DNA from: Lepidodermella squamata
Taxonomy: Eukaryota; Animalia; Gastrotricha
Assembly: GCA_047495785.1 (NCBI GenBank)
Contig: JBLDXI010000007.1
Span: 1,860,001 to 1,924,000, forward strand
Direction: 5' to 3'
Length of the DNA stretch: 64,000 bases
Every line of letters begins with the position of its first letter. The first letter of the stretch is position 1. Positions 5,375 to 57,196 of this stretch are shown here, in pieces. The notes beneath the pieces were generated by a model. The model did no database searches, was not told where the DNA came from, and saw only the letters and a program-made list of their open reading frames with translations. The translations under genes were made by a program, and so were the position numbers.

Positions 5375-7018
5375 TATACGTATGAGAATAACTAAAAACA
5401 CAGGCCTTGAGCACGTTATACGTCAGGATCTTTATAGAGAAAACGTATGGAGAGTGCAGCAACTGATGCATATATGAAAAAAAAAATATCGAGGGGTGGG
5501 TGCCATAGAGTACGGCCTAGAGAATTAAAACAAATGGCGTAAAAGTAGCTTTCTTCATCTTCCCCAAGTCATTCGCGCGTCTGGTCGTTTAGTTCATACG
5601 CCATTCTAAGCGAGTCGTTACGGCGCCCACCCCGCGATATGTGGGGGAGCATGTGTTGGAGATTAGAAATATCACTAGCTGGGGAGATCAGTGGGGAGAT
5701 CAGTGATCATATTTACGTGATAACAGTGCTAGAATGAAATCCCAGCGAAAAAGTGCTTGGCCGAACATGCTTTCAGCCAATTTTTGCTGTTTGGGCCCAC
5801 ACAGCTGACCCACTAGATATGAGACACCTACTTTCTAACGTCTAACCTCGTTTTACTCAGAATTCTATGGTCTACACAATGTCGCATATTTTGCAGATGT
5901 GTCAAAATCGATTTGTGACATCCGAATTGATTTCCTCAATGAATTCTAAGTTGGGCACTTATGCCGTGAGATCATAAGCATAAACATAAGCCTACTAATG
6001 GGAAATTGAGCAGCCAAAGGTTTTTTCTTTGTGGAAAGGAGTTGTGAGTTGGAGACCAAAGCGGCCAATGGACTTGGTTCCACATCCCCTAAAAACACTG
6101 CGATTAAGTCTATCAAATTTATTATTTAATACTCTGTTAAATTGGTATCCTATCAATATTTTCAACGAAAAATAAATAATTTGAATTTGTTTCAATAACC
6201 TTCGCCGTGAATTTGTTGCGGGCACTTTTTGAGCCTCGAAAAACTCAGCTGACTTTCTGCGGTTTGCCCTGAACCCTGAACCCTGAACGTTACCTGGATC
6301 ATTTGAATTTGAGTTTCATTTTACCGTAGCCCCCTACGCATTTTGCGCACCCTCCTTTCCAGAACCTCATTCGCGGATTTTAGATTGAAAATAGATCCAC
6401 GTGTGTTGCTGCTATTGTAATTTCACTGTCAGCAAAATTCCCCGTCATTTATACCTCAATTTAGCCAATTTTAATAGTACTTCCCTTCGAGATGATGCTT
6501 AGTTTTATATTTTTCTTCTGTTGCCCGAGTGGGAGGATACATTTTTATATATTAGAAATTAAAATGGTAAAAGTTGTCATTCCGAAGGAGTACTTGATAC
6601 ACACCATGACTGTTTGGTTCGCAGCCAATGGCTAACACTGTGGTTGCTTTGGGGCTCTTAATGCGACTTGAAGTGATAGAGGATAGATTAGTCGCCTTTG
6701 AAGATAGCTGGATCGCTCATACTTTTGACATTGATGCTTTGATTGATTTTGAAAGTTTGGAAGAGAAATTTCTTACGCTCTTGGCGATCTCACCCCGGCA
6801 GTTATGAAACAGGATGTAACTCGAGCTGAATGAATGAAGTGATTTTTACATATTGTTTGAATTTCTCATGGTACCTAGTTATCGTTAAAATCCTTTTATA
6901 CCATTCGTTGATACTTGATAGCGACATGGATAATTGAAATTCGTGTTCATCGCTTCATGTTGTGGGGTATTCAAGTGAAATTGTATATTTTCTTACTCTA
7001 GATATACCCGTGTTTTTG

Positions 7019-7948
7019 ATGGTCACATATGTTCGGCGCCCAACTTGCTGCAACAGTCCTTATGTTCCGACCAGGAATGAACAGATTGCAAATATCTTAA
7101 CACACGGGGTAAGTAATATTCCTGTGATTAAACATATATTGCAACAGGGTTATTTTCTCAAAAAGTTATGGATCGTACCGACCACTGTATCGGTATTGCA
7201 TTTGATATCATTGGCGCGTGATAACGGTGCTCTATTTCCGGTAACTATTTATGGCATATCCCTCATACTGCTCTTTCTGGTGTCGACGGTGTTTCATGCT
7301 GTGTCATTTTTTGCCAGCTATGATAGGTAAACTCAGTCATGAAAAATGAATTTATTTATATGGTATTTCTTCAGTAAATGGCGATATTTCTTGCACCTGT
7401 CAGATCGAACGATGATTTTTATTTTCATTGCCGCATCTTACTCGCCTTGGATTCAGCTTAAAGAGCTCGATGAATACGCAACATATCCGTTGAGCTCATC
7501 ATTCGCGAGGTCACTCTTCATGTGGGCAATTTGGATTTTTGCATTTCTCGGTGTTTTGTATCAATATACTTTTTACGAAAAATACAAGCATAAAGGTATG
7601 TGTTAATGAAGCCTTTGAATATATTATATAAGCGTGTATTTTCAGAAACTTTGATTTATGTTACTGTTGGCTTGCTACCCGCGCTGACTTTGCTCTTCGT
7701 GCTGGCCGACATGTCAGGAATATTGGAACTTTCCCTAGGCGGGGCAGTATACGTTATTGGGCTATGCTTTTTCAAATTAGACGGACGAGTACCATTTGCT
7801 CATGCGATTTGGCATGTGTTTGTCATCCTAGGTATGAAATTAAAAAATAGTTCAATATTATGTCATCTATGTCGCATTTTCAGGTTCCCGCATTCATTAT
7901 AACGCAATCGAACAGTATTTGGTTCGACAATCAATAAGTGTGAAATAG
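7019..7948 (+). CDS. MMD: MMD/MMD2-like PAQR (hemolysin-III family) membrane protein, 5 exons
   Basis: EQIANILTHG, LFLVSTVFH, DRTMIFIFIAASYSPW, FFKLDGRVPFAHAIWHVFV and a last exon IHYNAI match the MMD/PAQR10-11 pattern. Start ATG position is inferred. Confidence 0.88.
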
Positions 7949-10900
7949 CTCGGCATTTGCGGTCATTAATTGCTACCCGATAAGAATTCAGCCGTGTGAA
8001 TTTCTGACATTTGCTATTTTCAGATCTCCCTCAAGTTGTGAATGAGGATTCATAAATTACATGATTATAGATGCGAAACTCTTTCTATTGCGCTTAGTTT
8101 TCCACATCGCTTTATTTTTTTCTGGTCAGTCGCTTTTGTCTGGTTTGCGGAAAAACGAAGTCATGACATGTTTTTATTTTGTCCAGTTATTCGCACAAAT
8201 TATTTTCTTTCTACCTGATACTGCGACAACAGAGTGATGATGACGAAAATCTTCCTATCGAACCTGGAAGTCGAGTATTAATTCACTCTCATTAGTTTGC
8301 CTACGCACGATCGATGCGCACGTTTTATTTGTACGTCTGCGCTCTGATCGGTATGTTTTAACGAATGATGTATGTGCGTGCATGTATGTGTTTGTATTTC
8401 TCAAGTCCTGCGCAATGTCAAGGCCCATCCGGGGCATTCGGTGCAAAACATCTATTTTTCACCAATTAAGTGATTGCTTATTTTTAGTCCCAACTTGTTA
8501 CCTCGTTGGTCTTTGATTTCGGGTTACTACGCACAGTTAATTGTTCTTTCCCTCGTTACGTTACTACACCCGTCGTTAGCTTCCAGTTATTTTGTGCCAA
8601 AATTGTTGCCAGCAAGCAAAATTTTTATTATTGCTCCATTATTTTACGCGGAGGTGGTGCGATTTCTTGATTTTCAATATTCTAGTTTACCCGTGTCTTT
8701 TTATCGATTGAATTGCTCGAATAATAGCTAGTATATTCTCCTGCACGGTTCTATTGACTCATCGTTCGTTTCTGTAAATTGTTTTATTTATTCATGATTT
8801 TACCCTGTTTATCCATCTTCCGGTCTTTGTGGTGCTACCCGTGTGCTAGTCAAGCGGCAGAGGAAAATCAAATAATACTAATAATCGAATTCACCGGTGT
8901 GATGTCTCAAAAATGTTGTTGGGTTTCTTTATTTCAGTATTTATGCCTCATCTTATTTTTGTACTCGGCGAATGATGATGATGATGTAGTTTTTGCTAAT
9001 TTATTATTAATTAATTATTATTTACAACGGAATTCAAATAAAAAACGAGTTATTGGTTTTGAACCATGATGTTTTTTCGCCCTGCGTCATCCCGCATTGG
9101 TACACGCGTGAGCTCAGCTGCTACGCGACGTCATGAAAGGCGGTCTTTCAACATCGTCCAGCGCCTAAAAAACCCGCCGGCGTTTTTCAGGACAGCAATT
9201 CTAATGAATGAAATGAATAAAATTGGCATCACTCCTATTGGCAAATTATAAATTTTGGCAGGAATTTTCTCGGCGTAAAAAATAAGGTAAATAATAAAAT
9301 GGCGCACAACCCTGGCAGCAGCAGCAGCAGCCGCAGCCACCCTAAAAAATATAGGCGGCCGAACTAATGGCAACCACGCACGCGGAACAGCCAGCTAACA
9401 CCAAAAACGTATAAAATGCGTTTGGTATACAATGAATAGAAAAAAAACAGAGAGCTCAAAATGAGCACGATGTAGGTAATATGCCCGCATGCATAGGCGT
9501 ATAATAAATACCCTTATGCATGCTGCTATCCAATACATACCATCACTCAATAACAGCGATAAGTAATGATACTATGCTGCCGGACTTGCCTGATAACTGA
9601 CTCATCATGGACAACAAAACACGAAAAATCACAAGAAACAAACGGCTTTATTTTTTTCAACGCCGCTACATCTTTCAGTAAAACAAGTGTATATATATTT
9701 AGATTTTTCAATATATATATATTTGAATTTATATATATTTTTCTTTCTCCAATCATCGATGACTTGAATGATTTGCCGACGACTGCGACCTCATCATGGA
9801 CAAAACAGAAGTTGAGTGATAGTATCCACCGAAAATTGATGCACATAAATGATTTTTTCGCGCCTACTACGGTTTGCAAATTTTTAAAGAGGGTTACACA
9901 TTGCTAAAGAAAAACAACTTAACAGCGAGAGATAGCGAGAGAGCGAAACTGAATTAGAAACATTTACGTAATTTGATCGTTCACCGGTCATGTCTCACAA
10001 GACAGACGACTCGACGTGAGAGATGATTAAGAGGCTTTGTAAAGAAGACACTAATCGGACGAATCATAAACATTAAAAATCAAGAGGACACATGATTCAT
10101 TGATATTATTACATAAAATATAACAAAATTATTCAGTTTCAAATCATTGATAGCAGCATTGGAAAAGCGGCGTTTAAAAGCCTGCTGTGAACAAGGGAAG
10201 TGGTTGAACTTTGGGAGCTAAAGTTATGTCTGGGCGAGGGCTTTCATTAGACCCATTTAAAGAGAATACTTAAAAATGAACCTCGCTTAACAACAACTTT
10301 CTGTTATTTCTCAGTACGATCGCCGATAACCATTAAAACAAAGGTTATAAGTTGTCATATAAAACAAAAAGCTCTTCCGAACGCTGAGTCGACAAGTTGT
10401 TCCACACAACACACCTGGAAATGTGAAGCAGTTTTACCCGCAGCTTTGATGACTACAGTATTACGCAAACAACGATTGCAGAGCTACCGAGAGAGCTTAT
10501 ATAAGGTTGTGTGATCAACGATAACAATGAGAAAACTTGCCTCTCCACATAAGAGACCGTTGCATGAAAAACTAAGGGGCAACATTTCGCAGATATGACA
10601 TACCCCTAAATAATTGCTAATTTCTCTATGAGAGTTTCAGCCTTATAAAGAAATTATATGACGCGCATAGAAAGGAAAACAAGAACTGAAGAAAAGAACG
10701 AAATAACACAGACATGAGACAGTGTCGTAGTGAGAAAAATGTGCTTCTATTTACAACGATCTAACGTTACAACTCCTTCGCTCCGCAGAACATCAGTTCA
10801 GTTCTGTCCATCATCCAGATTAACAATTTCCAACATCTACATGGATAAGAGCTGATCGATGTTCAGGATAACTTCCACATCTTCATTTTTCAAGTCTTTT

Positions 10901-38635: not shown

Positions 38636-41021
38636 TATTTTTAGGCAAAACGAAAATGAAAGAGCGGGATTCCAATTCAGACAAAACCGTTGCATTATTG
38701 CAAGTCCTTTATTGCGAGGCTATCTTTCTGTTTACAAAATTGGAAATTTGGAGGCGCCAACTTATAATTTTTGTTTTATTGCCATTTTGATCATTATTTG
38801 TCAGTTTTGCCACGTTCCGGAGCGGCTATAATCTATCGGCCTAAAGTGAAGACCTCTCCGTGATACCGAACAACACCGCAGCTGGTATAAGCTGCTATAT
38901 TCGCATTTTCTATTCACGTATTTTTCGTGCTATTTATTGTTTGCCTATACAAAAAAGCGAGCACTGCGCCTAATGCTGATGCGCCGACGCCCTGAGATCC
39001 GTCACAATCGTGGAGGTGAGGTGATGGTAGTAGTGCGCGGAAGCTTTTTACTCGCTTGCCCATTAAAAATTCAAACCCCGCGCACTTTACTCATCCTCTA
39101 CTCGACGCTTTTTTTCCCAGCGGTGCCAGACTGGCTACATAACTTAATGGAGCATCAACCAGCCGCGCTCGGTGGGAAATCGCGCCGGTTTTTAGAATCA
39201 TATTGCGAAATTGATTGTTATGCTTTCTACATGGCAAAAACCCACCCGAATTGTACTTCGTCATCATCATCATCATCATCGTCATATCATCGCAGGTCGG
39301 CGGCGCGCAATACAACCAAAGCGCGGCTCCTTGTTTGGGGTTAAGCATAACGTGGCGATGTTAAGAGGATTGGCCACAACGACACCGCGCGGTAGCCGGC
39401 AGAAATTCAGCGAGAGATGTACCCATTGGAGATTGCGCGCACATATCATCTATACCTACCTAGCTTCAAATAATAATTTTCGCAAAGGGACTGGTTTATT
39501 GCCACCGCCGCCGCCAGTCGCGTCGTGCGTATTGGTGGGCTACGCAGTAATACCCACGTCGAACAGCAACAAACGCACTGCAGGTCACCACGCGAACCAG
39601 GCCTGGCGGCGGCGGCTTTATTGAACGACAATATTCATTCAAAACATGCCTTGGCTCATTATCGTCAGTTTTAACGGGCCGTGAGGATTGCTGAAGCCCT
39701 TAATCGACGAGGTACTAGTTCCACTGCCGTGTTCTATTTCTGCAATAAATTTCCGGTATTAAAATGAAAAGTCCTCCTTAAATATCGTTTTTTCTGCCAT
39801 TTTTTTTAGCTGCGCATAAAACAACCCGGCAGAACCTTGTGTTTGTTTTTATAATTTCTAGGGCGCCTGTCGACTGCTGCACGAGGGGGTCATTAAAAAA
39901 GAACGCGTCGTTTATTATGGTTTTTTCGCCACTGCCACGTGCTGGTCGTGTGGTGCGGGCTCATCCCGCGCTCTCGGTGCCCATTAATAAAGAAGACCAC
40001 GACAGCCACTCTGGCGCTGCAGAAAACACACGCGCGTTTATTGCTTGTCTCCTCTCGCTCGGCGGCTGCCTGGTGTGTAATTATTTTCGCAGTAATGTGG
40101 CCGAGCAAAGCCAACCCAGACCTGGCCACCTCCTCCCGCTCGCTCGCTCGCTTGTTGCCGACCGTTGGTTTGGTTGGTTGACAATAATTTTAGTACTGCC
40201 GTACAGTTATTTAGCAGCAGGGGCTGCCGTATTGCAATATTTTGAGAAGCGTGCGCGCGTTCCATCGTATCGTGGGCCCTAAACCCGCCACCGCCGCTGT
40301 CGCATCATTACCACCACCTTCGTCGCGAGCCTCGCAAGGTGCAATGGAAGCCTCAGCGTGAATTGTTTTCGTTTCATTTAAGCCCGGTACGTGCGTTCCC
40401 TAAACTTCAAACGCCCAAAGCCATGCTGGAAATAACATAATAATAATAGGCGCTTTTAAGAGATTAGTCCTATTATTACTTCGCGTTTAGTTGTGTTATT
40501 ATTGTTATATAGCACCCGGGCGCTCGAGTTGCTAAATCTGATGAATTACCTTTATCGCCGTTCGCCATCGTCGACACACGTTTTGTGTAACAGACACAGG
40601 GCGCATCCTGTCCCATCCATCGCGAGTGAACTTTGGCTGGCCACCACTGTACGCGGTCTTTTCATAACGGGCGCGCGGGGCCTCTCGGGCACGCCTTTCT
40701 TCTCACACCGGATTAGGTGCAGCACCGTAGCCTGAATTGCGGCGGCGCTAATGCGTGCACCCGATTATGACTATGACTATGATGGTGATGATGGCACTTT
40801 TTCAAAGGAGGGGCGCCACGATCGCCATTCATTCGCTCATAGACGCCAGCAGTTTCAACTTTTCAAAGTTGCTTAGCAGCGCGATGCGTCAAAGGCGCAA
40901 AAAACTCGCGCATAAATGGTACTGAAAAGTTACCATCTCAATAACACTATGCACCGAGAAATGGTCACCTTAATTTTTTATCTCTTTTTAATTAATAGCT
41001 GTGTTAATACTTTGTAAAAAA

Positions 41022-44000
41022 ATGGTTTACTGCTGCATGGTCTGGGGCTGCCAGAACCGACCTGATCGGGAGGATTGCCGAAGCCGCGGGGTGTCTTTCC
41101 ATCGTCTCCCCGTTTCCGATTTAAACCTGCTCCAAAGCTGGGTCGCTAAGATTGGCGTGACAAATTACCCGTTGTCGCGCAATCTCCGAATCTGTTCCGA
41201 GCATTTTGAACTGGATAATTTTGTCGTTCATAAAGACGGTCGGCGTGTCTTGAAACGAACCGCCGTGCCGTCGCTATTCAACTTCCCGGCCGATAACGTT
41301 CAAGCCATGTTCCCAGCTTTCCCGCTCCACAATTTGTCGACCGATGACTTGCGGGCTTTGAAGGCGGAGCCTACGACGCCTAATTCGATGATTGCGAAAA
41401 TGAGCGCTGCATCGCCTGCAAACTTGTCTATGAAAAATAATAACCACAACGCTAACAACAACAACAACAACAACGGCGAAGAGAACCAGCAGGGATCAGG
41501 ACCTCCATCGACCCGCTGGTCTTTGTTGCCTGATGGCAAGAACATGATCGATTCTCCTTATTCAATTGGCGACGACATGAAGCCGCATGTCCACGAAGAC
41601 CTTCGGCGGTCAGGTGATAATTACGAAGTAAGTTCCGTTTTTTTCTTAATTAACGAAACTACATACTGATAAGTATTTGCGAGTTATACTTAATCACCTC
41701 GAAAAGGACGATTGATCGTTTTTTAGTTCGCCCTACTGTCGTAGGCGCTGTGCGTTTGTCACACTTTTTCGACAGATTTCGGTCATTTTTCTTGTGTGAC
41801 TTCGTGACAATTTCGATAACTGTTACACGTTTGTCTTGAAGTTGGATGTCCGGTCAGGATGACTGCATTTTTCTAGATATATCTCGACATTCGGTGCAAA
41901 GCTGTAACAAAACGAATCATATTACATTGCGATACGGTTGCGTTTTTTTATTGAATTTAACACTTTAATGAAATAATCTACGCTCGGATGCACGTAGCAT
42001 GCGCTATTCCGAAGCGAAAGGTGATGGCGCTGAGGCGAATTCGATTACCTGGGCGTTTTTTTTCCACATCTCGCCTTCGCATGTTTTTCTCGCTACAATG
42101 ACAGATGATGCCACGGCACTCATTATAACGCGCTCACGTGTACGAAAATAGATCAAGACGGCGCTAAATCTCGTAAAAAAACGCCATCCGCAAAATTACT
42201 GCGGTTAAAAAAGATAATAACGCTTGAGGTAAGGCGATAATACAATAATAACAAAAGAGCCCACGTCAGGAAATAAATTCATCGTAGTATGCAATGCCAA
42301 TGTTTTGTGAGGATTCGCAAAACAACTTCCTTTTTTTGCGAAGCCTTTCATATCTACCTTAAATTTGATAAAAGATGCGCTGATTTATGCACTCATCATC
42401 ATCTTGTAATGAGACATCATTGTCGCGTGTGATTAATGTGGAAAAGATGTCTCGGGCGAGATGTAGATGCGCGCAACGAAACTCGCACCTCTTTTGTTCT
42501 CAAAAAGTGCGCCCTGCGTTATATTATTAGTATGCGGTACAACTTGCGATGGGTGCGACCTCTCTCGCGCGGCCAACCAGGTTCCCTCGGCCCAGCCAGC
42601 GTGAAGAAGGCAAGGTGCACTACACGCTACTTGCTATAAACTACCTAGCCGTTATGCGATTATTATTGCCCGCCAATAAATTTATTTACTATGCGTTATA
42701 ATAAATTTTCGCTCAACAGACAGTTACGAGTTATTCGCATAAAAATCCCGCGAATCAGGCGCAATTTCCGTGAAAAGCCCGCGCGCGATGCGACTTGATT
42801 ATCGCGCCTAAATTAATAAAACAGTTCTCTGCTCGACTTCCGCTTACAGTCAATGCACACGCGGTGCCATAAATGCGCGGCATCTACAAAGCGAACGCGC
42901 CAACATTTATTGCGCTCAAGTTTTATGCGTTTCCGTTAACGTCATGTAGTAGTCGTAGTAGGTAAACGATCGTAAAAATTGCCAGCTATAACTGCTTCTA
43001 TTTTCGAAATAACAGCCATTCCTGAAATCTTGTTTACCAACACTTGATTTCTTTACAAGACGCTCTCGCTTATTAATTTCGGTGTCGCATTTTTTACCCG
43101 AGCTACAGTGTCATAAAAACTAGCCGTTAGAAGACCCCTGCGTAATAAAACACCTTCACATGTCTTTATTACTAGCTGGCTGCTTCATTTTTCTTAGAAA
43201 TGAATAGCTTGCACGTGCAGATATCAACTTTCCATGCTTCGCGGCTTGGGACTGCTCACTTTATTTTTAGCTGAAATTGGCGATTTGACGTCGGTGCAGA
43301 CCTGACACTTCTAATCAATTTTCAGTTGTTCGTATTCTACCCGCCACTGCGATTTTTTAAGGCGGATCTATAAACTTCTTATGTTTTCAATAGCCGAGCT
43401 ATTAATGGTGAAAAATGTCGGTATGTGGTGACCAATCTCTTTCACGGGGGCTTTTGATGCTGCCAAAAAAACACGCCACCTCTATTGAAGCATTCACGTG
43501 AGCGCGCGCACTCGTTACTCGTTTGACTCAGCGCCGGTATTGTAGCGCGATAATTTCAACATCGTGCAGTAGTATGATGTTTGATAACCCAATTTACGCT
43601 ATTTTTAGCTAAAAGCGCTAGCTTAGTTCAACTGCTTGTTTTCGCGTTTAAATAAATTTAACGCTGCGTTACAGCAACATGTGACTCAACTTGCATCATT
43701 ACCCCTGAAAAACCACCGACAAATATGGTTATTTTTGTAACCTTGAAAATGAAAAAAGTCATGGCTTTCGTTTCTACTATCAAGCGTTATCTTTTAAAAA
43801 TAACATGGCGCTTAAAGTAAAGCAAGATAACCACAGTCAAAACGGAAGCGAACATGGCAGTTCGAGCGAAATAACAGTCGACTCGCCCCTTTCTGATGTG
43901 AATCACTGCAGTAATATCGGAACCGCGCCTTCACCCCACTCATCGTCGACTGGTGGCCACGGCGGCGGAAGTGGAGTTGCTTCTCGCAAACAGTGGAGCA

Positions 44001-46611
44001 TTGAAGATAAACTGCGATGGATTGGAATGGTCGAAGCGGAAAAACTACCGCGATCGGTTATTTTACGCCGATTTCCTGGCCTCAGCTCAACAACCCTATC
44101 GATGACGCTCCGCCGTAAGAAGTTCATCATAAAACGCGCTTTGACAATGAACGGTGTTCCGACATCACGCAAGCGACTTCGAGCCGGCCAGTTCGAACAG
44201 GTCGAGGAAGAACTCGTTCGTTGGATTAAAACTGACGGCCGCGTGTTGAATGGCGGTGCATTACCGAGACCGGAAATGATCAGGCGGAAAGCTACCGAAA
44301 TCGCGGCCAGGCTTGGGGTTCAGGGCTTTGGCGCTTCGACCGGCTGGCTTCATCGCTTTAAGCAGCGCTACGATTTAGCCTCATCTTTGGTACCTTAAAT
44401 AGGCTTAGAATAATTCGATAATAATATTTTAAAATTAAGCTGGATTTTTTAATAATTTTTTGTAACAATTTTTTCTGATTTTCAGGGCTCTCCAAGTGCT
44501 GCCGAGACGCCTGGCGCTTCGTCGACTGTTTCCGGAAATGGCGGTCACAACGGTCACATGATGGGTGGGGATGATCATCTGCCTTCATCGTCTCCTCTCG
44601 TCGCTGTTTGCAACAACGACGATATGATCGATGGTGAAACTGATGAGGTGAACGTCGACGGGTCTGTTGAGCCTGATGCGAAACGCTACCGGTCATCGCC
44701 GGCCATCAGCGGCGATCAAAACATGCCGGGCAGCGGCTATGCGCGTCACCCGTTGGCGAACGGCGCCCATCATCACCTGTTGAAAATGCATCAGCCGCAT
44801 CATTTGACGCAGATGCGGCGGCCAAGGCAGCGGAAAGCTGTTCTGCCGCGCCAGTCTCGCGCCTCGCCTAACCAACAGGTCGGCGGTATGCCTCAGCCTT
44901 CGCCGCAACCACAGCAGCAGCAGCAGAACCAGCAACAGCTCACGCAACAGCAACAAGCGGCTGCGGCTGCGAATTTTATGAGTCAGCTATTTGGGGGTGC
45001 AAATTTTCTCACTGCTTTTCAGAACCAGGACCGACTCGGTTCAGGTCAGTTTTATTCCTTATAAACCAGTTATATTAGCGAGCGAAATACTAGACATTGA
45101 AAGGGTTAGGATTATAAGTGTCTTACATTTTTTTACACTACATTGTAGTCGTCTGACGAAAAATTTGAGACTTATCCGAATAATGCAGGGTAAGGGAGAA
45201 TCATTTTGGAAGATTCCCGAATATTTCTAAACGAATTTTACAAGATTGAACAAATTTGCATGGCGCCATACTTCAAATTAGTCAGCAAAGTCTTTAATTC
45301 GAAAAGAATGGAATCATGGCTGCAAAACTTGCGCGACTTCCAGGGAACCATTATAAAATGTCCAGATTTTTAGCTGATTTATGACTATGTTTTTGCATGA
45401 TGGCATATTTCGAGATTTCACAAGAAGGAAATAGGAAAATGGTTAGCGAGCTAAGCGAGCAACAATTTTGGGTTGTTACCATGAAAAGTGTCTAAAAATG
45501 CTTGGAAGTTGAGATTGTTGAAATATTTCCAGGTTTTATTAAATTTTGTGTTCTCGAAGCGGTGATCTGAGTGATGACCTTACACTGAAAATCACACAGA
45601 ATTCCATGGTAATTGCTTGGATTTTTTTAATTTATCATGGCATTGCCGGAAATAACGGAAAAGCATATATCGGCGAATGAATTGTTCAAAGATTTTTCCC
45701 CTTCTGGTCGAAGTTCGTTCTGCTTTTAGATTGATTCCCTTGAAATAAATCGATTTCTTTATTTTCGATGGGATTTCTAAAAAATCGTTTATTCTAAGAT
45801 TTGTACTCACCAATCTTTACCTATTATTAGCATAGGCGTAGTAGCCGTGAATTATTTCGGGCTGTCTTTCGATTGGTTGAGGTAGACGAAGTGCCAAAAA
45901 TTAAGCAATTAGGCACTTGGTGACCTTGTTTCAGGATTTCTCTGGGGGTGTTGAAGACCCAAACCTCCTACGCCACTAGTCATATTATTGAGTAATCCCG
46001 ATAATTTCCTACCTTAGCCTAGCTTTTGAAGTACAAATTCTCATTTCTTGGAATTCTTAGACTATTTAGTTTGAGATTTTCCTGGAATTTTTATGTTCTA
46101 ATGAGCTTTCAAAACTGATTAGCCTCATATTAATTGTTGATTTGTGCATTTTTTAGGAACCCCAGTGGCGACTCAACTCGGTGCCGGTGCTCTCGACCTG
46201 TCGGTTCGCAATCTGCCGGTGCCACCCACGCCTCTCCTCTCTATGCCGCCCCCTGGCGTAGCCACCTCATCGCTTCTCAACGCCATGGCGCCTCGCTTCG
46301 GAGCTGGCGGCGACGTAGGCCGGGTTCGTTCACTAATCGCCGGCTATCGAGAATCAGCCTCGTTTCTAACAAAAGCCGCCGATGAACTGGAAACATTCAT
46401 GGCGCAGGTGCAGCAGATCGCCACCAGCAACAACAACAATCAAGTTTCCGCATCCGGCGCTTCGTCGACAGTCAGTTCGACGAGCAGCTCATCGTCATCG
46501 AGCAATAACAATAACAACACGAACTCGCTTTTATCCTCAGCTTTTTTGAATCTTATGCCGTCATTGCCTTCGCTGTCACAGCAACTCGTTCAACAAGCTG
46601 AACTTGCCTAA
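41022..46611 (+). CDS. THAP-domain isoform: exons 41022-41627, 44486-45044, 46157-46611 (THAP + low complexity + ALDLS + NOL4-like C-terminal helix)
   Basis: C2CH THAP signature CMVWGC..FHRLP..W..RICSEHF..AVPSLF (41022-41279). Strong phase-0 donor GAA|GTAAGT at 41628, compatible with phase-0 acceptor TTTTCAG|GGC at 44486. Then a phase-1 intron 45045-46156. The THAP-to-44486 join is inferred. Confidence 0.72.
43805..46611 (+). CDS. CENP-B/pogo double-HTH isoform: exons 43805-44389, 44486-45044, 46157-46611
   Basis: RKQWSIEDKL..LSSTTLS (psq/CENP-B N-type HTH) plus RKRLRAGQFEQVEEELVRW..IRRKATEIA..FGASTGWLHRFKQRY (Tc5/CENP-B HTH). No DDE domain follows. Phase-0 donor TTG|GTACCT at 44390 and a 96-nt intron to 44486. 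Confidence 0.8.
45831..45979. mobile_element. Possible small degraded non-autonomous DNA element in an intron
   Basis: Imperfect termini CATAGGCGTAG ... CTACGCCACTAG. No clear TSD. Confidence 0.25.
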
Positions 46612-48032: not shown

Positions 48033-48941
48033 TCATTTTTTTATCGAGCTGTTCATGTGGTCGATCAATTTGATCATAGCGTCAGTTGATTCAATTGAGC
48101 GTTTTATGTCATCAATGAACGTATCGATAGGAGCGAATAGCGGGTGCTTGGACTTCCACGACTTGACCAGAGAATAAACGTCGCCAACAGTGAAGCAGAC
48201 ACTAACAACAAACATGCCCTTGGCAAGGAAGGACAAACCGCTCCCGCTCATAATTTTTTCAGGTGTCCTAATAAGCATTTGTTGTTGAGCTGGTGACAGT
48301 AAGCCCATTACTTCAGGATGAAAAGATACCGAGATTCCTTTGCCGGTGATCGATTTGCCAATTTGGAGACCGACTTTGTTCGCTTGCAAAATCTTCGTGA
48401 TATTGCCGACTTTTACAGCATTTGACACTTGGCTGGCGAGACTCGTCAAATTGTAAACTTTCTTACCCGTGTCGAAAATGAAAGCAATCACGCTAAATAG
48501 AGCTGCATCGGTATCAATTTCACAAGATCTTTGCAAGTGGCTCACTAGTTCATTCCACTTCTCCAGTTCTTCGTTCAGCTTACTGACACTTCGCTGATGA
48601 GCACTCTGAGCTTTTTCGATTCTTCTTATGGCGATTTTGCCATCATGGCTATCACCAAATGCGCATAAGACAGTAGCAGCAATGCTGCCAGCTGCCCCGC
48701 CAACAGCTACACCGGCTGCAATGGCAGAAAGACCAAACGTTAGAGGCGCAAAGAGGAGTCCGGCAGTCGCCACGGTGCCCGCTACGCCAGCGCTGGTTCC
48801 AACAGTTTTCACAATATTGGAACCTTTGTGGGAATTTTGCACGAAACGACTGATGCTTTCGAGCTCACGAATAGTGCTCCAACTCTCATTTTTGTAGGTC
48901 TGAAGCGCTTGTCGAAGTGAATCTATCGAATAGTTATCCAT
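48033..48941 (-). CDS. Apolipoprotein L-like protein, intronless
   Basis: IRELESIS..HKGSNIVKTVGTSAGVAG..GLLFAPLTFGLS is the ApoL hydrophobic-hairpin signature, followed by a coiled coil and C-terminal DVYSLV..W...H. Confidence 0.75.
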   Translation of the reverse strand: MDNYSIDSLRQALQTYKNESWSTIRELESISRFVQNSHKGSNIVKTVGTSAGVAGTVATAGLLFAPLTFGLSAIAAGVAVGGAAGSIAATVLCAFGDSHDGKIAIRRIEKAQSAHQRSVSKLNEELEKWNELVSHLQRSCEIDTDAALFSVIAFIFDTGKKVYNLTSLASQVSNAVKVGNITKILQANKVGLQIGKSITGKGISVSFHPEVMGLLSPAQQQMLIRTPEKIMSGSGLSFLAKGMFVVSVCFTVGDVYSLVKSWKSKHPLFAPIDTFIDDIKRSIESTDAMIKLIDHMNSSIKK

Positions 48942-53573: not shown

Positions 53574-56500
53574 TTATTGGGCGGCGTTGTGCTTATTCGC
53601 GTTGCCGCTATTGCCCGAAGCCGGAGCGGCTGGTTGAAAGGTGTCAAGCGACTCTGGGTCCCAGTCGGCATTGGCCCAGATAGAACCGTCGGAGGCGAAG
53701 AAGGACGCTGTTAGCGAGTTGACAAGCGGGTCGATGCCGGCGCCGTTGTTGCCCGGCTGGTTCTGACTGCCGCCGGCGCCCATCTGCGGCGGCGGGCCCA
53801 TGAGCAGCTCGGCGACCTCGGGCGCCCACCAGTCGGGCGGCGGGCGCAGGCTGATGCCGGTCACCGTCAGGTCGAGCGCTTCACCGGTGAGCAAATCAAC
53901 TGGCGTCTGGCCGTTCATCTCGTTGACCATGTCCTGCAGCAGCAGTTCCTCGATCGAGTCCGTGTCGCCCTCGGACGACGGCGTCGCGCCCGCCATGGCG
54001 CCGTTGCCGCCGCGGTGCGGGCCGTGGTGGCTGTGGTTGTGGTGCGAGGCGGAGCCGCCGCCGCCCAGGTTCAGCGGCGGGATGTTGAAAGCAGAGGGCG
54101 CACCTAGTAAGCCGGGATGTTCACCGTCCGTGGCCAAATCCGTGAAGAGAGCCGATTCGGCCGATAGTAGATCGTTTATTAATTCAGGACCAAATAGATC
54201 CGTCAGGTCACCGGAAACCTACAAAATTCATTAAAAAGTATTAAAATAAATAAATTCTGAATAATTTTAGGGAAGAGAAAAAAATATTAAAAAAATGAAA
54301 AAATGAAACGCCCGATGTGGGGCTCGAACCCACGACCCTGGGATTAAGAGTCCCATGCTCTACCGACTGAGCTAACCGGGCTATTTACATAGTAACGATA
54401 TGGGTTGGGCAGTATGTGGGGAATATACAGAAAGCACTCACGCACTACAATAATATGTTCGGTAATACCCGTAATAAAGTGGTAAAAAAACATGTGCTCA
54501 TTATATGGTATAGGTATACTATAGAATAGCCAGGTATAAGTTTGCGTGGTCGACATTTTGCTATTCGGGAACTACAGCTATAATGTTTCCAAGTTTGGGC
54601 ATCGACTATTTCAGTAAAATTTGCAAAAAAATCTTACGTGATAGGTTCGGTAAAAAAGGTAAAAAAAAAAATAGACAAAATTAGAAAAATTTGCCAAAAT
54701 AATGCAGTCATTACTCCAGAAGCCTCTAAATAGACGAAAATCGAATAGACATCGGCATCTCACATAAAAACTAAATTTGATTTCGAAATTGGTCACCCAA
54801 CTCAATCGTTGCTCAATAATTTTAGGGCTATGGCAATGATTCTTTGAAATGTGACCAGCAGAAAGTTTATAGAAATAAAAATCGAATTTCGCCGTTCAGT
54901 AAAATTTCTGAAAAATTTCATTAATTTATTTTAGCGGTAGCCGATAAATGTAGGCCACAATAAGTAAAATTGAGGCTCAGCTCAAAATTTCACCAAAATA
55001 TGGTTTTTCTCCACTTTTCAAGTACCGAATATTCGAAGTAGGTATATCGAATTTCAAAATCAGTGATTTTTCTGATATCAGCAGCCAAAATTGAAAAATT
55101 GCCTATATACCTGAGGATCCCAAGTAGCCAAAATAAAAATCCCAGGTTAATGTGCTCAATCGTCATCGATCAAGATAAATTCGAAAACGCAAAAAATATA
55201 GAGCTCGAGCGCTCGAATTTGAGACTGAAATCTCAATTATAGGGTGCGAATATTTTGGCCGATTGCAATTACCTTGAGGCGCTTGCTGGGTTCTTCGAGG
55301 GTGTCCATGGCCCCGAAGCGGCGCCGAGGCGAGAGCTCGTCGTCGCCGACATCGCCGGCGCTCTCGAGCAGGAAGGCGTAGTTGCGTGACAACTGCCACA
55401 GCGACGTTTTCTGCGTCGGCAGCAGCATGCCCGTTGTGGCGTCGCGTTTCCGCGACACGCGCTCGAAGCAGCGGTTCAGCTGCAAGTTGTGCCGCACCGA
55501 ATTCTGCCAGCTAGGGTCCGCCGACCGGAAGTACGGGTAGTTGTCCATTATCCAGTCGTAGATCTCTTGCAGGCTCATCTGCGGCTTGTCCGGCGAGCTG
55601 GTCAGCGCGAAGTAGATCAACTGCGAGTAGGAATACGTCGGCTTCAGATGAATATTCGCCGTACCAGCTATCAACTGGTCGAGCGATGACGGAGGAGCAG
55701 GCTCCATAACTGTACAAATTGGAGGAAGAGTGACGTGGCCAGCCTGAAATAAAAAAAATTATCCATAAAATTCGAATTCATATATTTTTTAATTCTTTCA
55801 AATTCTGGAAGACCGTCATAACAGAAAACACCCAAAACAGCAAAAGCGACAAAACAGCAAATTTTTCAACTTGCGACATAACAGCAGAAACACGTTCATC
55901 TTTTGCATTATAAGTTTTCGCTGTTTTGTCGCGAAATTAAAAATTTGCTGTTTTGTCGCATTCGCTGTTTCGTGCAGTTGCTGTTTTGTCGCTGTGCCCA
56001 AATTCTTTATCAGGTTAAAATTGGGAACTCCGAAATTTTCCCTCTTGGTTCTTTGTACTGATTCTCTACCCGAATCGATGCAATATCAAATGGGATTCTA
56101 GGTGTTCAATGAGCCAAAGCTGTTTTTATCGATTTATTGCATGCTATCATTAATTATTAAACCCTAAACTTTTCCCTAAAATTGGCAGCACCAAAGTGAA
56201 AGTGAAAAATACAGTTTAACAAAAAAAAATGGGTTGAATAGGAATCTCAAAAAAATTTCAGTACTTCGTTTGATCTTAGCTCCATTCTCAGTAAAAAAGT
56301 TTATAAACCAATTTGAGGCTATTTTAATTAAATCAATGTGGAAATCCAGATCCAGCGACCCAGGCGGAAATTACATAAAAAGAAGTCGAAACCGGAGCAA
56401 GACCTCCATTCTTCAATTTCCCTTGAGATTTTAGTAAAAAAAAATCTATAAAAAAAGACGAACAAAATTTCTTTACCTGGTTGGTGTAGTAACCATTTGC

Positions 56501-57196
56501 GTCCAGGTGTGACCAGGCGTCGTTATTACCGGTGATTTGAAGCGGCTCCATGCCGGCTGGCACTAAATGGTGCTCGCCGTTGGCCGTGATAAATATTTGC
56601 TGCGCTTGTGGCGCCTTCAACAACTGAGAACCGCGTGGCGTTGTCACATAGGGCGACGCGTTGCCCGCCTGCCCGCCGCCGTAATTCGAATGCTGCATCG
56701 CTAGAACGCTAGACGACGCGCTCGGCAGCCCGGCGGACATGGGCGCTTTCATCATCAGGCCATTCCGCGGGCTGGTCGGCGGTGTCGAGCCGGGTAGCAC
56801 GCCCAGCTTCACGCTTTGTAGCCACCCTAAATTTGTCAACGAATCGTCGAGGAGTTCGTCGTCGTTATTCGAACCGTGGTGGTGGTGATGGTGGTGATGG
56901 TGGTGGTGGGAGTGGCCGGAACTTGCGGAGCTGTTGTGCGACCCTGAGCTGCCGCCGGATAAATTCCGCTGAACTAGCGACGAAGAGCCGACGAAACGCT
57001 GAAACGGCCGGTTCGAAGCGCCGTTCGACGCCGGGTTCAGTATAGGTGCGCTGATCATGATGCCGCCCGGGGGTGGGCCCATGGGCGCTGGGGCTAGAAA
57101 ATGGTGGTTATTGTTCATTCCACGATCAACGCCGTGAAGTCGTATAGAAGGTATGCCATGATGCTTGTTGTCCATCATCGAAAAATCTGTTGCCAT
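53574..57196 (-). CDS. Forkhead transcription factor, FoxJ1-like; exons 57196-56477, 55743-55273, 54218-53574
   Basis: N-terminal LDDSLTNLGWLQ (FoxJ motif) and forkhead domain KPTYSY..IYDWIMDNYPYFRSADPSWQNSVRHNL. Both introns are phase 0 GT-AG. C-terminal LDLTVTG. PolyHis tract. Confidence 0.85.
54309..54381 (-). tRNA. tRNA-Lys (CTT), inside intron 2 of the forkhead gene
   Basis: GCCCGGTTAGCTCAGTCGGTAGAGCATGGGACTCTTAATCCCAGGGTCGTGGGTTCGAGCCCCACATCGGGCG forms a full cloverleaf with anticodon CTT and has downstream T-runs. Confidence 0.97.
55815..55992. repeat. Inverted array of a 13-bp unit GCGACAAAACAGC (foldback) in the forkhead gene intron 1
   Basis: Units point rightwards at about 55815-55891 and leftwards at 55914-55992. 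Core arms 55846-55891 and 55914-55959 are near-complementary. Confidence 0.85.

Follow-up and report, generated by a model that had tools for sequence, protein, structure and literature searches.

A candidate transcription-factor locus with THAP and CENP-B/pogo-type DNA-binding exons upstream of one tail in the gastrotrich Lepidodermella squamata

The two DNA-binding exons and the tail

The window analysed here, 64,000 nt of the gastrotrich Lepidodermella squamata (GenBank assembly GCA_047495785.1, contig JBLDXI010000007.1, positions 1,860,001 to 1,924,000 of the forward strand), contains a compact locus of 5.6 kb in which two exons with DNA-binding domains of transposase type, a THAP zinc finger (the fold with which P-element transposase binds DNA) and a CENP-B/pogo-type bipartite helix-turn-helix (HTH), lie upstream of a tail encoded by two exons, all on the plus strand. 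The same elements were found in one further species, an animal represented by metagenome contigs and called the relative below. All features described from the sequence were re-read directly from the letters of the window. We propose that this is a lineage-restricted transcription-factor locus made from two domesticated transposase DNA-binding modules.

The THAP first coding exon (41022-41627; 606 nt, 202 codons) starts with an ATG and is closed by a strong phase-0 splice donor, GTAAGT (41628-41633); left unspliced, its open reading frame (ORF) reaches a stop at 41669. An acceptor-like tract, TTTTTAATTAATAG (40985-40998), lies 23 nt 5' of the ATG and is, by its sequence, a candidate trans-splice or 5' untranslated region (UTR) acceptor; its counterpart in the relative is ATTTTAG, 7 nt before the THAP ATG. 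The identity of the exon, already asserted in a preliminary description of this DNA, is borne out by Pfam THAP (PF05485), which matches over the full model (1-87) with an E-value of 4.7e-16 and 59.8 bits against a cutoff of 23.9, and by phmmer, where residues 1-86 match the THAP1 domain in PDB at E 3.7e-12. The signature of the zinc finger (41022-41291) is intact, namely the zinc ligands C5, C10, C58 and H61, together with P30, W40, F62 and the AVPSLF box, and all of these are invariant in the relative. Outside the finger the exon holds no basic cluster or effector motif, and it has neither an HCF-1-binding motif nor a coiled coil. A 22-residue linear motif, TRWSLLPDGKNMIDSPYSIGDD (41511-41576), is identical in the two species, while the THAP-exon linker that flanks it has diverged with indels.

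Between the two DNA-binding exons is a gap (41634-43782) that presumably represents an intron and/or an internal promoter region. The HTH first coding exon (43805-44389; 585 nt, 195 codons) again begins with an ATG, 20 nt downstream of an AG at 43783-43784 (context TTTCTACTATCAAG) which is a weak AAG acceptor, and it ends in phase 0 at a weak donor, GTACCT. Within its DNA-binding domain (43982-44368), the second HTH is called by Pfam HTH_Tnp_Tc5 (PF03221; E 7.5e-14, 51.9 bits against a cutoff of 22.2), and Pfam CENP-B_N (PF04218), the model for the first half, makes no call on the exon. The earlier assignment as a CENP-B-type double HTH thus holds for the second half by Pfam and for both halves by alignment and fold, the first half being left without a Pfam call. 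In a phmmer search against PDB, residues 60-188 align to CENP-B residues 4-129 at E 4.5e-11, spanning both halves, and the HTH family profile matches 1HLV, the CENP-B/DNA crystal structure, over positions 1-125 at E 7.6e-38. The AlphaFold (AF2) model of the domain (predicted local distance difference test, pLDDT, 89.8) has template-modelling (TM) scores of 0.72-0.76 to the same structure, and its best matches in a Swiss-Prot fold search are CENP-B, TIGD2-7, JRK, JRKL and POGK. Because the CENP-B alignment and the fold show the first half, we accept it despite the missing Pfam call, and on this alignment and predicted fold the second exon holds the CENP-B/pogo bipartite HTH in full.

Beyond the one relative, the nearest HTH sequences in an exhaustive HMMER search are about 30% identical and are either multi-HTH arrays or relatives of pogo; of the 97 nearest homologues, 22 have a DDE_1 catalytic domain, and THAP is absent among the common families of these 97. 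The arrays, the nearest non-orthologous kin of the HTH, have an uncharacterised architecture in which the entire CENP-B-type bipartite domain comes in 3-6 tandem copies and a catalytic domain is lacking; they are seen in a fish, molluscs, shrimps and metagenome and Logan contigs (P0005, P0006, P0007, P0008, P0010 and P0012).

The HTH exon leads into the tail through a 96-nt intron (44390-44485), in which the weak donor is paired with a strong acceptor, TTTTCTGATTTTCAG/G at 44485/44486. The first tail exon (44486-45044), delimited by its ORF and by alignment with the tail of the relative, is disordered and ends in a phase-1 GTCAGT donor; it is followed by an intron of 1112 nt (45045-46156; GTCAGT...TTTTTTAG, phase 1) and by the last exon (46157-46611), whose stop codon lies at 46609-46611. 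When spliced virtually, the HTH exon and the tail give an open frame of 532 amino acids (aa), and the THAP exon joined to the same acceptor gives one of 539 aa. The starting observation of the preliminary description, that both exons are ATG-initiated, have phase-0 GT donors and fit in frame onto the acceptor at 44486, was verified at each coordinate. The gene model of HTH exon plus tail is firm.

The tail is for the most part disordered and fast-evolving, with several retained blocks. Its first exon has two basic clusters of nuclear-localisation type, KRYR (44681-44692) and RRPRQRK (44816-44836), as well as a poly-Q run, and the blocks kept in the relative are SPxxAxTPGASSTVS at the N-terminus, EPxxKRxRSS and RRPRQRK. 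The last exon has a CtBP-type motif, ALDLS (46189-46203), within GALDLSVRN, which is kept in both species, and further on an amphipathic helix of ~40 residues (46318-46419) of which RVRSLIxGYRESAxFLxKAADELETF is kept in the relative; AF2 models a single long helix in this exon (residues 51-96, pLDDT 77-90), the remainder being disordered. Since ALDLS in RAI2 binds CtBP experimentally, with a dissociation constant of ~5 uM (PMC11187106), and the motif is conserved here, the tail has the look of a co-repressor-recruiting effector, and recruitment of CtBP and repression are predicted for it. A search of ~15 billion proteins found no homologues of the tail beyond the relative's own ORFs, and likewise no match to this THAP or to the tail was found in a set of 186 stored proteins except those ORFs.

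Two further observations concern the tail. A 17-nt direct repeat (16/17 identical) at 44513-44529 and 46456-46472 encodes GASSTVS twice, once in each tail exon, and in the relative GASSTVS is present at the N-terminus of the tail only. In Atlas language-model features, the tail approaches the cluster of HTH_NOL4_2nd with values (0.82 for the relative's tail, 0.67 for exon 4 of the window) that are weak and below threshold. As for the HTH exon, kinship with NOL4/NOL4L was considered and rejected: HTH_NOL4_2nd (PF23079) does not match the exon even at E up to 10, leaving no match at the sequence level, and the Swiss-Prot fold search does not have NOL4 among its top 30.

Layout and selection in the relative

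In the collection of ~15 billion proteins, the sole close relative of the locus is a 203-aa THAP ORF, 74% identical, from ENA metagenome assemblies; the contigs that carry it, L001-L005, are alleles of one species, ~99.3% identical. No further relatives were found in JGI metagenomes (with THAP and HTH alignments), in IMG/VR or in GTDB genomes. In L001, the THAP exon (5625-6197) ends in phase 0 at CAG/GTGAGC and is separated by 1.18 kb (1182 nt) from the HTH exon (7380-7901), which also ends in phase 0 and again has a weak donor, GTACTT; the intron of 119 nt that follows (7902-8020, GTACTT...TTTTCAG) lies in the same place as the 96-nt intron of the window. Virtual splicing gives open frames of 501 aa for THAP plus tail and 484 aa for HTH plus tail. 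The tail is one uninterrupted exon (8021-8953), colinear with that of the window across the point where the latter has the intron 45045-46156, and this phase-1 intron is thus a gain or a loss between the two species.

The window and the relative share the THAP, HTH and tail elements in the same order and orientation, and in comparisons by blastn and tblastn these are all that is common to the 16-kb locus of the relative and the 64-kb window. The flanks of the relative hold EFTUD2, a PKC-like kinase and HP1-like genes, and those of the window P450, ApoL, Forkhead and Dna2. Given that the neighbours differ and only the trio is common, the three elements were kept as a unit of constant order and orientation through the rearrangement of their surroundings. 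For the preliminary description, which had looked to synteny in a second genome as a test, this means that the trio is retained there amid different flanking genes. With regard to the flanks themselves, the EFTUD2 of the relative is at most 74% identical to named proteins, the best being from molluscs, a brachiopod and echinoderms, and downstream of the locus its contigs carry a tandem cluster of at least 3 HP1-like genes with chromo and chromo-shadow domains (L001 14391-16236; L004 14391-17143).

Between the two species synonymous sites are saturated (dS, the synonymous rate, was uncomputable or ~3 by NG86). At this distance the THAP domain has a nonsynonymous rate (dN) of 0.045, with 86 of 90 residues identical (95%), and the HTH core a dN of 0.19 and ~85% identity. 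Both exons are thus under strong purifying selection, and low dN at saturated dS excludes that they are neutrally decaying transposon fragments. Polymorphism among the alleles of the relative offers too few variants for a measure of constraint. Among the alleles L001, L002 and L003 the 119-nt intron (L001 7902-8020) is hypervariable, with 23 variable or indel positions, nearly all of them in L002; the 1182-nt gap has 4 variable sites only, and the coding exons have 1-4 each.

Splicing of the THAP exon

From the sequences of the two species we modestly favour, at about an even chance, the interpretation that the THAP and HTH exons are alternative first coding exons on one shared tail. Each head would have a first coding exon to itself, which begins with an ATG and has a separate acceptor upstream. 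In transcripts initiated at THAP, the strong phase-0 donor would be used, the weakly defined HTH exon would be skipped and the THAP donor would join the tail acceptor at 44486, as the HTH exon does. The outcome would be two repressors with a common effector tail that read different DNA sequences. The THAP-to-tail junction and the separate 5' ends of the two exons are what we infer here. The wider proposal, in which two independent transposase captures act as interchangeable DNA-reading heads, each probably served by a separate start or trans-splice acceptor, on one CtBP-recruiting repressor tail, is put forward tentatively, at slightly less than an even chance.

Several observations lead us to favour the shared tail. 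Linkage persisted although the flanks were scrambled. The THAP donor, which closes a diverged linker, is of strong consensus in both species (GTAAGT, GTGAGC) and is conserved in phase 0; the linker remains in frame over a length difference of 18 nt, and past the donor the THAP frame closes after 12-14 codons in both species. Nothing in the gap looks like a conserved exon: blastn and six-frame tblastn find no similarity to the gap of the relative, no peptide of at least 5 aa is shared (shuffles give 1.7), and shared DNA k-mers are not above the shuffle expectation. Moreover, every AG before the HTH ATG would bring a premature stop to the THAP frame, after 3-22 codons across both species in virtual splicing. 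As the preliminary description had noted for the AG at 43783-43784, the THAP donor joined there reads RYLLKITWRLK and then a stop, after 11 codons, and joins to the other AGs 5' of the HTH ATG in the window (exon starts 43759 and 43675) reach stops likewise; in the relative there are two such AGs, and with either of them the THAP frame runs for 3-5 codons before a stop. That the HTH donor is weak in the window (GTACCT) and in the relative (GTACTT) would be expected if the exon is skipped whenever it is internal. Finally, the tail provides the basic cluster and the effector motif that the THAP exon lacks.

There are also points on the other side. The 15-billion-protein collection contains no cDNA- or Logan-derived protein from either species, the clusters being ENA metagenome contigs only. 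Compatibility of phase is a one-in-three chance and was inherited from one ancestor, so that its recurrence in the second species is no independent test. The comparison rests on a single relative species. The usual THAP protein stands alone and has ~200 aa, with 213 aa in human THAP1. The relative has a good TTTTTAG acceptor before the HTH ATG, which the THAP pre-mRNA might use, leading to a premature stop. Lastly, gene starts in the window look trans-spliced, and an acceptor beside each ATG is by itself no sign of a shared gene.

This last point deserves attention. In 11 of 13 inspected gene starts in the window, a pyrimidine tract and an AG lie 1-40 nt upstream of the ATG, and acceptors with no visible upstream exon to pair with are found at the starts 23994(-), 26137(-), 28579(+), 32372(-), 48941(-), 55707(-) and 57196(-), as well as at the THAP and HTH starts, 41022(+) and 43805(+). 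Unpaired acceptors at ATGs, which the preliminary description had passed over, are the pattern expected of spliced-leader trans-splicing, and judging from it this genome appears to use the process. With such acceptors near most ATGs, a serious rival to the shared tail, though a less probable one, is a reading in which the locus consists of two genes, one for a stand-alone THAP protein of ~200-215 aa and an independent HTH-plus-tail gene, perhaps in an operon resolved by spliced leaders. The THAP donor would then join a short, fast-evolving terminal exon within the gap, or would be used in some transcripts only, the ORF otherwise running to its stop at 41669. THAP proteins are commonly small and stand-alone, and an operon would account for the conserved linkage equally well. 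THAP and HTH do lie on the same strand with an acceptor before the HTH ATG, but the 1.2-2.2 kb that separate the THAP donor from the HTH acceptor make for a long intercistronic stretch. An AATAAA at 43651-43656, ~130 nt before the HTH acceptor, could be read as the end of a THAP gene, but it is not conserved in the relative, chance alone would give ~1 in 2.2 kb, and the sequence shows nothing else that looks like the 3' end of a THAP gene. The strong conserved donor disfavours an unspliced single-exon gene, and the maintenance of phase 0 across indels would have to be a coincidence. No sign of a hidden THAP terminal exon emerged either, the blastn, tblastn and peptide and DNA k-mer comparisons of the gap all being at chance.

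With regard to an internal promoter, the ratio of observed to expected CpG is 1.24 window-wide at a GC content of 0.43, which leaves no usable island contrast for the gap. The ratio reaches 1.8-2.1 over much of the THAP-HTH gap (41600-43100). In the locus of the relative it is 0.86, and the tail exon there is strongly depleted (0.1-0.45) over its first half.

A second alternative, which we regard as improbable, is that the THAP donor is cis-spliced to the acceptor before the HTH ATG, yielding THAP plus 5-11 residues with a stop at or just after the HTH start codon; HTH plus tail would then come only from transcripts trans-spliced at that acceptor or internally started, one acceptor serving in cis or in trans. 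In both species this is the first plausible acceptor downstream of THAP, and in the relative it is strong (TTTTTAG, 14 nt before the HTH ATG and, like the one in the window, 2 nt out of frame), the THAP-frame stop overlapping the HTH start there as ATGA. This overlap is not conserved, however, the stop in the window lying 13 nt past the ATG, where moreover the acceptor is the weak AAG. The arrangement would also place a premature stop before 1-2 exon junctions and a 3' UTR of ~1.6 kb, a poor design for a domain with a dN of 0.045.

It can further be asked whether one protein carries both heads. The preliminary description had seen no ready way of chaining the two exons, and this stands in both species for a junction through any AG upstream of the HTH ATG. 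It does not stand for an internal CAG/TGG, at a conserved Gln-Trp opening the HTH domain: joined there (exon start 43994), THAP, HTH and tail stay in frame, phase 0 being kept, and the product would have 671 aa in the window and 633 in the relative, where a pyrimidine-rich stretch precedes the site. Against this stand the facts that the CAG is accounted for by the conserved glutamine codon, that the window has no polypyrimidine tract there (GGCGGCGGAAGTGGAGTTGCTTCTCGCAAACAG) and that in both species the HTH exon retains its own ATG and upstream acceptor; we hold such a fusion to be very improbable.

The notion that the exons are inactive P-type and pogo-type remnants beside a host gene, with an accidental gene structure, draws on the transposase origin of both DNA-binding folds and on the 22 DDE_1-bearing sequences among the 97 nearest HTH homologues, and has a next to negligible probability in view of the identity of both domains at saturated synonymous sites, the syntenic layout in the relative and the intactness of every zinc-ligand and signature residue. 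The window, too, speaks against it. As the preliminary description had claimed, no catalytic domain follows either exon: the longest ORF in the gap is at most 67 aa, and tblastn with the 186 stored proteins, 22 DDE_1-bearing pogo relatives included, found no DDE-type match, nor any other, in the window outside the locus. Neither exon is flanked by terminal inverted repeats or has an extra copy in the 64 kb. The features of an autonomous pogo/Tigger element (DDE_1, terminal inverted repeats, multiple copies) are thus absent, as are those of a P element, in which a catalytic domain would follow the THAP finger between terminal inverted repeats. The high-copy, decaying fragments that the preliminary description had named as grounds for abandoning its reading are not what was found, given the low dN, the layout retained in a second species and the single copy of each exon in the window.

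The surroundings of the locus in the window are ordinary host genes, among them IRE1, a G protein-coupled receptor, a WD40 protein, P450, an ApoL-like gene, Forkhead and Dna2. Adjoining the locus downstream on the opposite strand is a single-exon ORF of 302 aa (48033-48941, -) with a Pfam ApoL match just above the cutoff (E 1.3e-6). Low-complexity ORFs rich in His, Gly and Gln lie on both sides of the forkhead-domain exon (55237-55707, -; Pfam E 9e-29) within 53574-57196 (-) and probably belong to the same gene; inside this span is a tRNA gene (54309-54381, -; Rfam 69.8 bits), the only RNA-family match in the window. At the start of the window, two adjoining ORFs (18-1634, +) have an extreme content of poly-glutamine and proline, with runs of at least 20 Q.

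Comparison with known regulators and significance

Host-transposase fusion genes such as POGK, KRABINER and SETMAR have been described as products of transposase capture (Cosby et al., bioRxiv 10.1101/2020.05.07.082677). In these, as would be the case for HTH plus tail, an exon for a transposase DNA-binding domain is spliced in frame to regulatory or repressor exons, the catalytic domain is lost and purifying selection acts on the product. The HTH-plus-tail model has the features of such a fusion as read from the sequence, namely an intron in the same place in both species, open frames and low dN. The described cases are from tetrapods, with one captured domain that usually lies downstream of host exons such as KRAB, whereas here, in an invertebrate, the DNA-binding part comes first, at the 5' end, and one tail is preceded by domains from two superfamilies unrelated to each other, P/THAP and pogo. 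The tail has no detectable homologues that would point to a host origin.

The same bipartite HTH is found in CENP-B, TIGD proteins, Jerky and POGK, with CENP-B matching at the E-value given above and TIGD3-7 having TM scores of ~0.7. All of these keep a DDE-derived central domain, and CENP-B has a C-terminal dimerisation domain as well. The present gene differs from this class in that the DNA-binding domain stands alone, joined to an unrelated disordered tail.

On the THAP side, THAP1-11 and the Caenorhabditis elegans proteins CTBP-1a, LIN-36 and HIM-17 have, like this exon, an N-terminal C2CH finger with an AVPTIF-like box and a low-complexity linker. The usual layout of THAP factors, in which THAP and linker are followed by a C-terminal helix, would be matched here if THAP joins the tail. 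In place of the HCF-1-binding motif and coiled coil of the family, this exon has the conserved motif TRWSLLPDGKNMIDSPYSIGDD. C. elegans CTBP-1a links THAP to CtBP by direct fusion, and a THAP joined to the tail would make a like connection. RAI2, EBNA3A (which has ALDLS) and LCoR are CtBP recruiters of the PxDLS class; the tail has the exact ALDLS within disorder, as in RAI2, the recruitment being a prediction here, and outside this motif there is no similarity to any of the three.

The proposed logic of a common effector combined with alternative DNA-binding modules at one locus is also that of Drosophila lola, mod(mdg4), fruitless and broad. In those loci a constant N-terminal BTB domain is combined with variable C-terminal zinc fingers of one family through alternative 3' exons; here the variable part would be 5' first exons chosen by alternative starts, only two in number and from two unrelated folds and transposase superfamilies. 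The preliminary description knew of no gene with this layout, and our literature searches agree with it, as no published gene that combines THAP and CENP-B-type heads with one tail came to light.

The locus is conserved and non-trivial, and the kinds of process it would bring together, transposase capture and alternative first exons, are already known. New transcription factors are known to arise from the DNA-binding domains of transposases, and the described cases consist of one captured domain and host exons. Should THAP turn out to be a gene of its own, its tight linkage to a pogo-derived gene amid rearranged surroundings would still be unusual, and HTH plus tail would be a clean invertebrate case of pogo domestication by the DNA-binding domain only, fused to a tail with a CtBP motif. 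If the shared tail is real, transposase capture can go beyond the single fusion and build a small combinatorial regulator, and the locus would be a natural experiment on separating DNA specificity from effector function.

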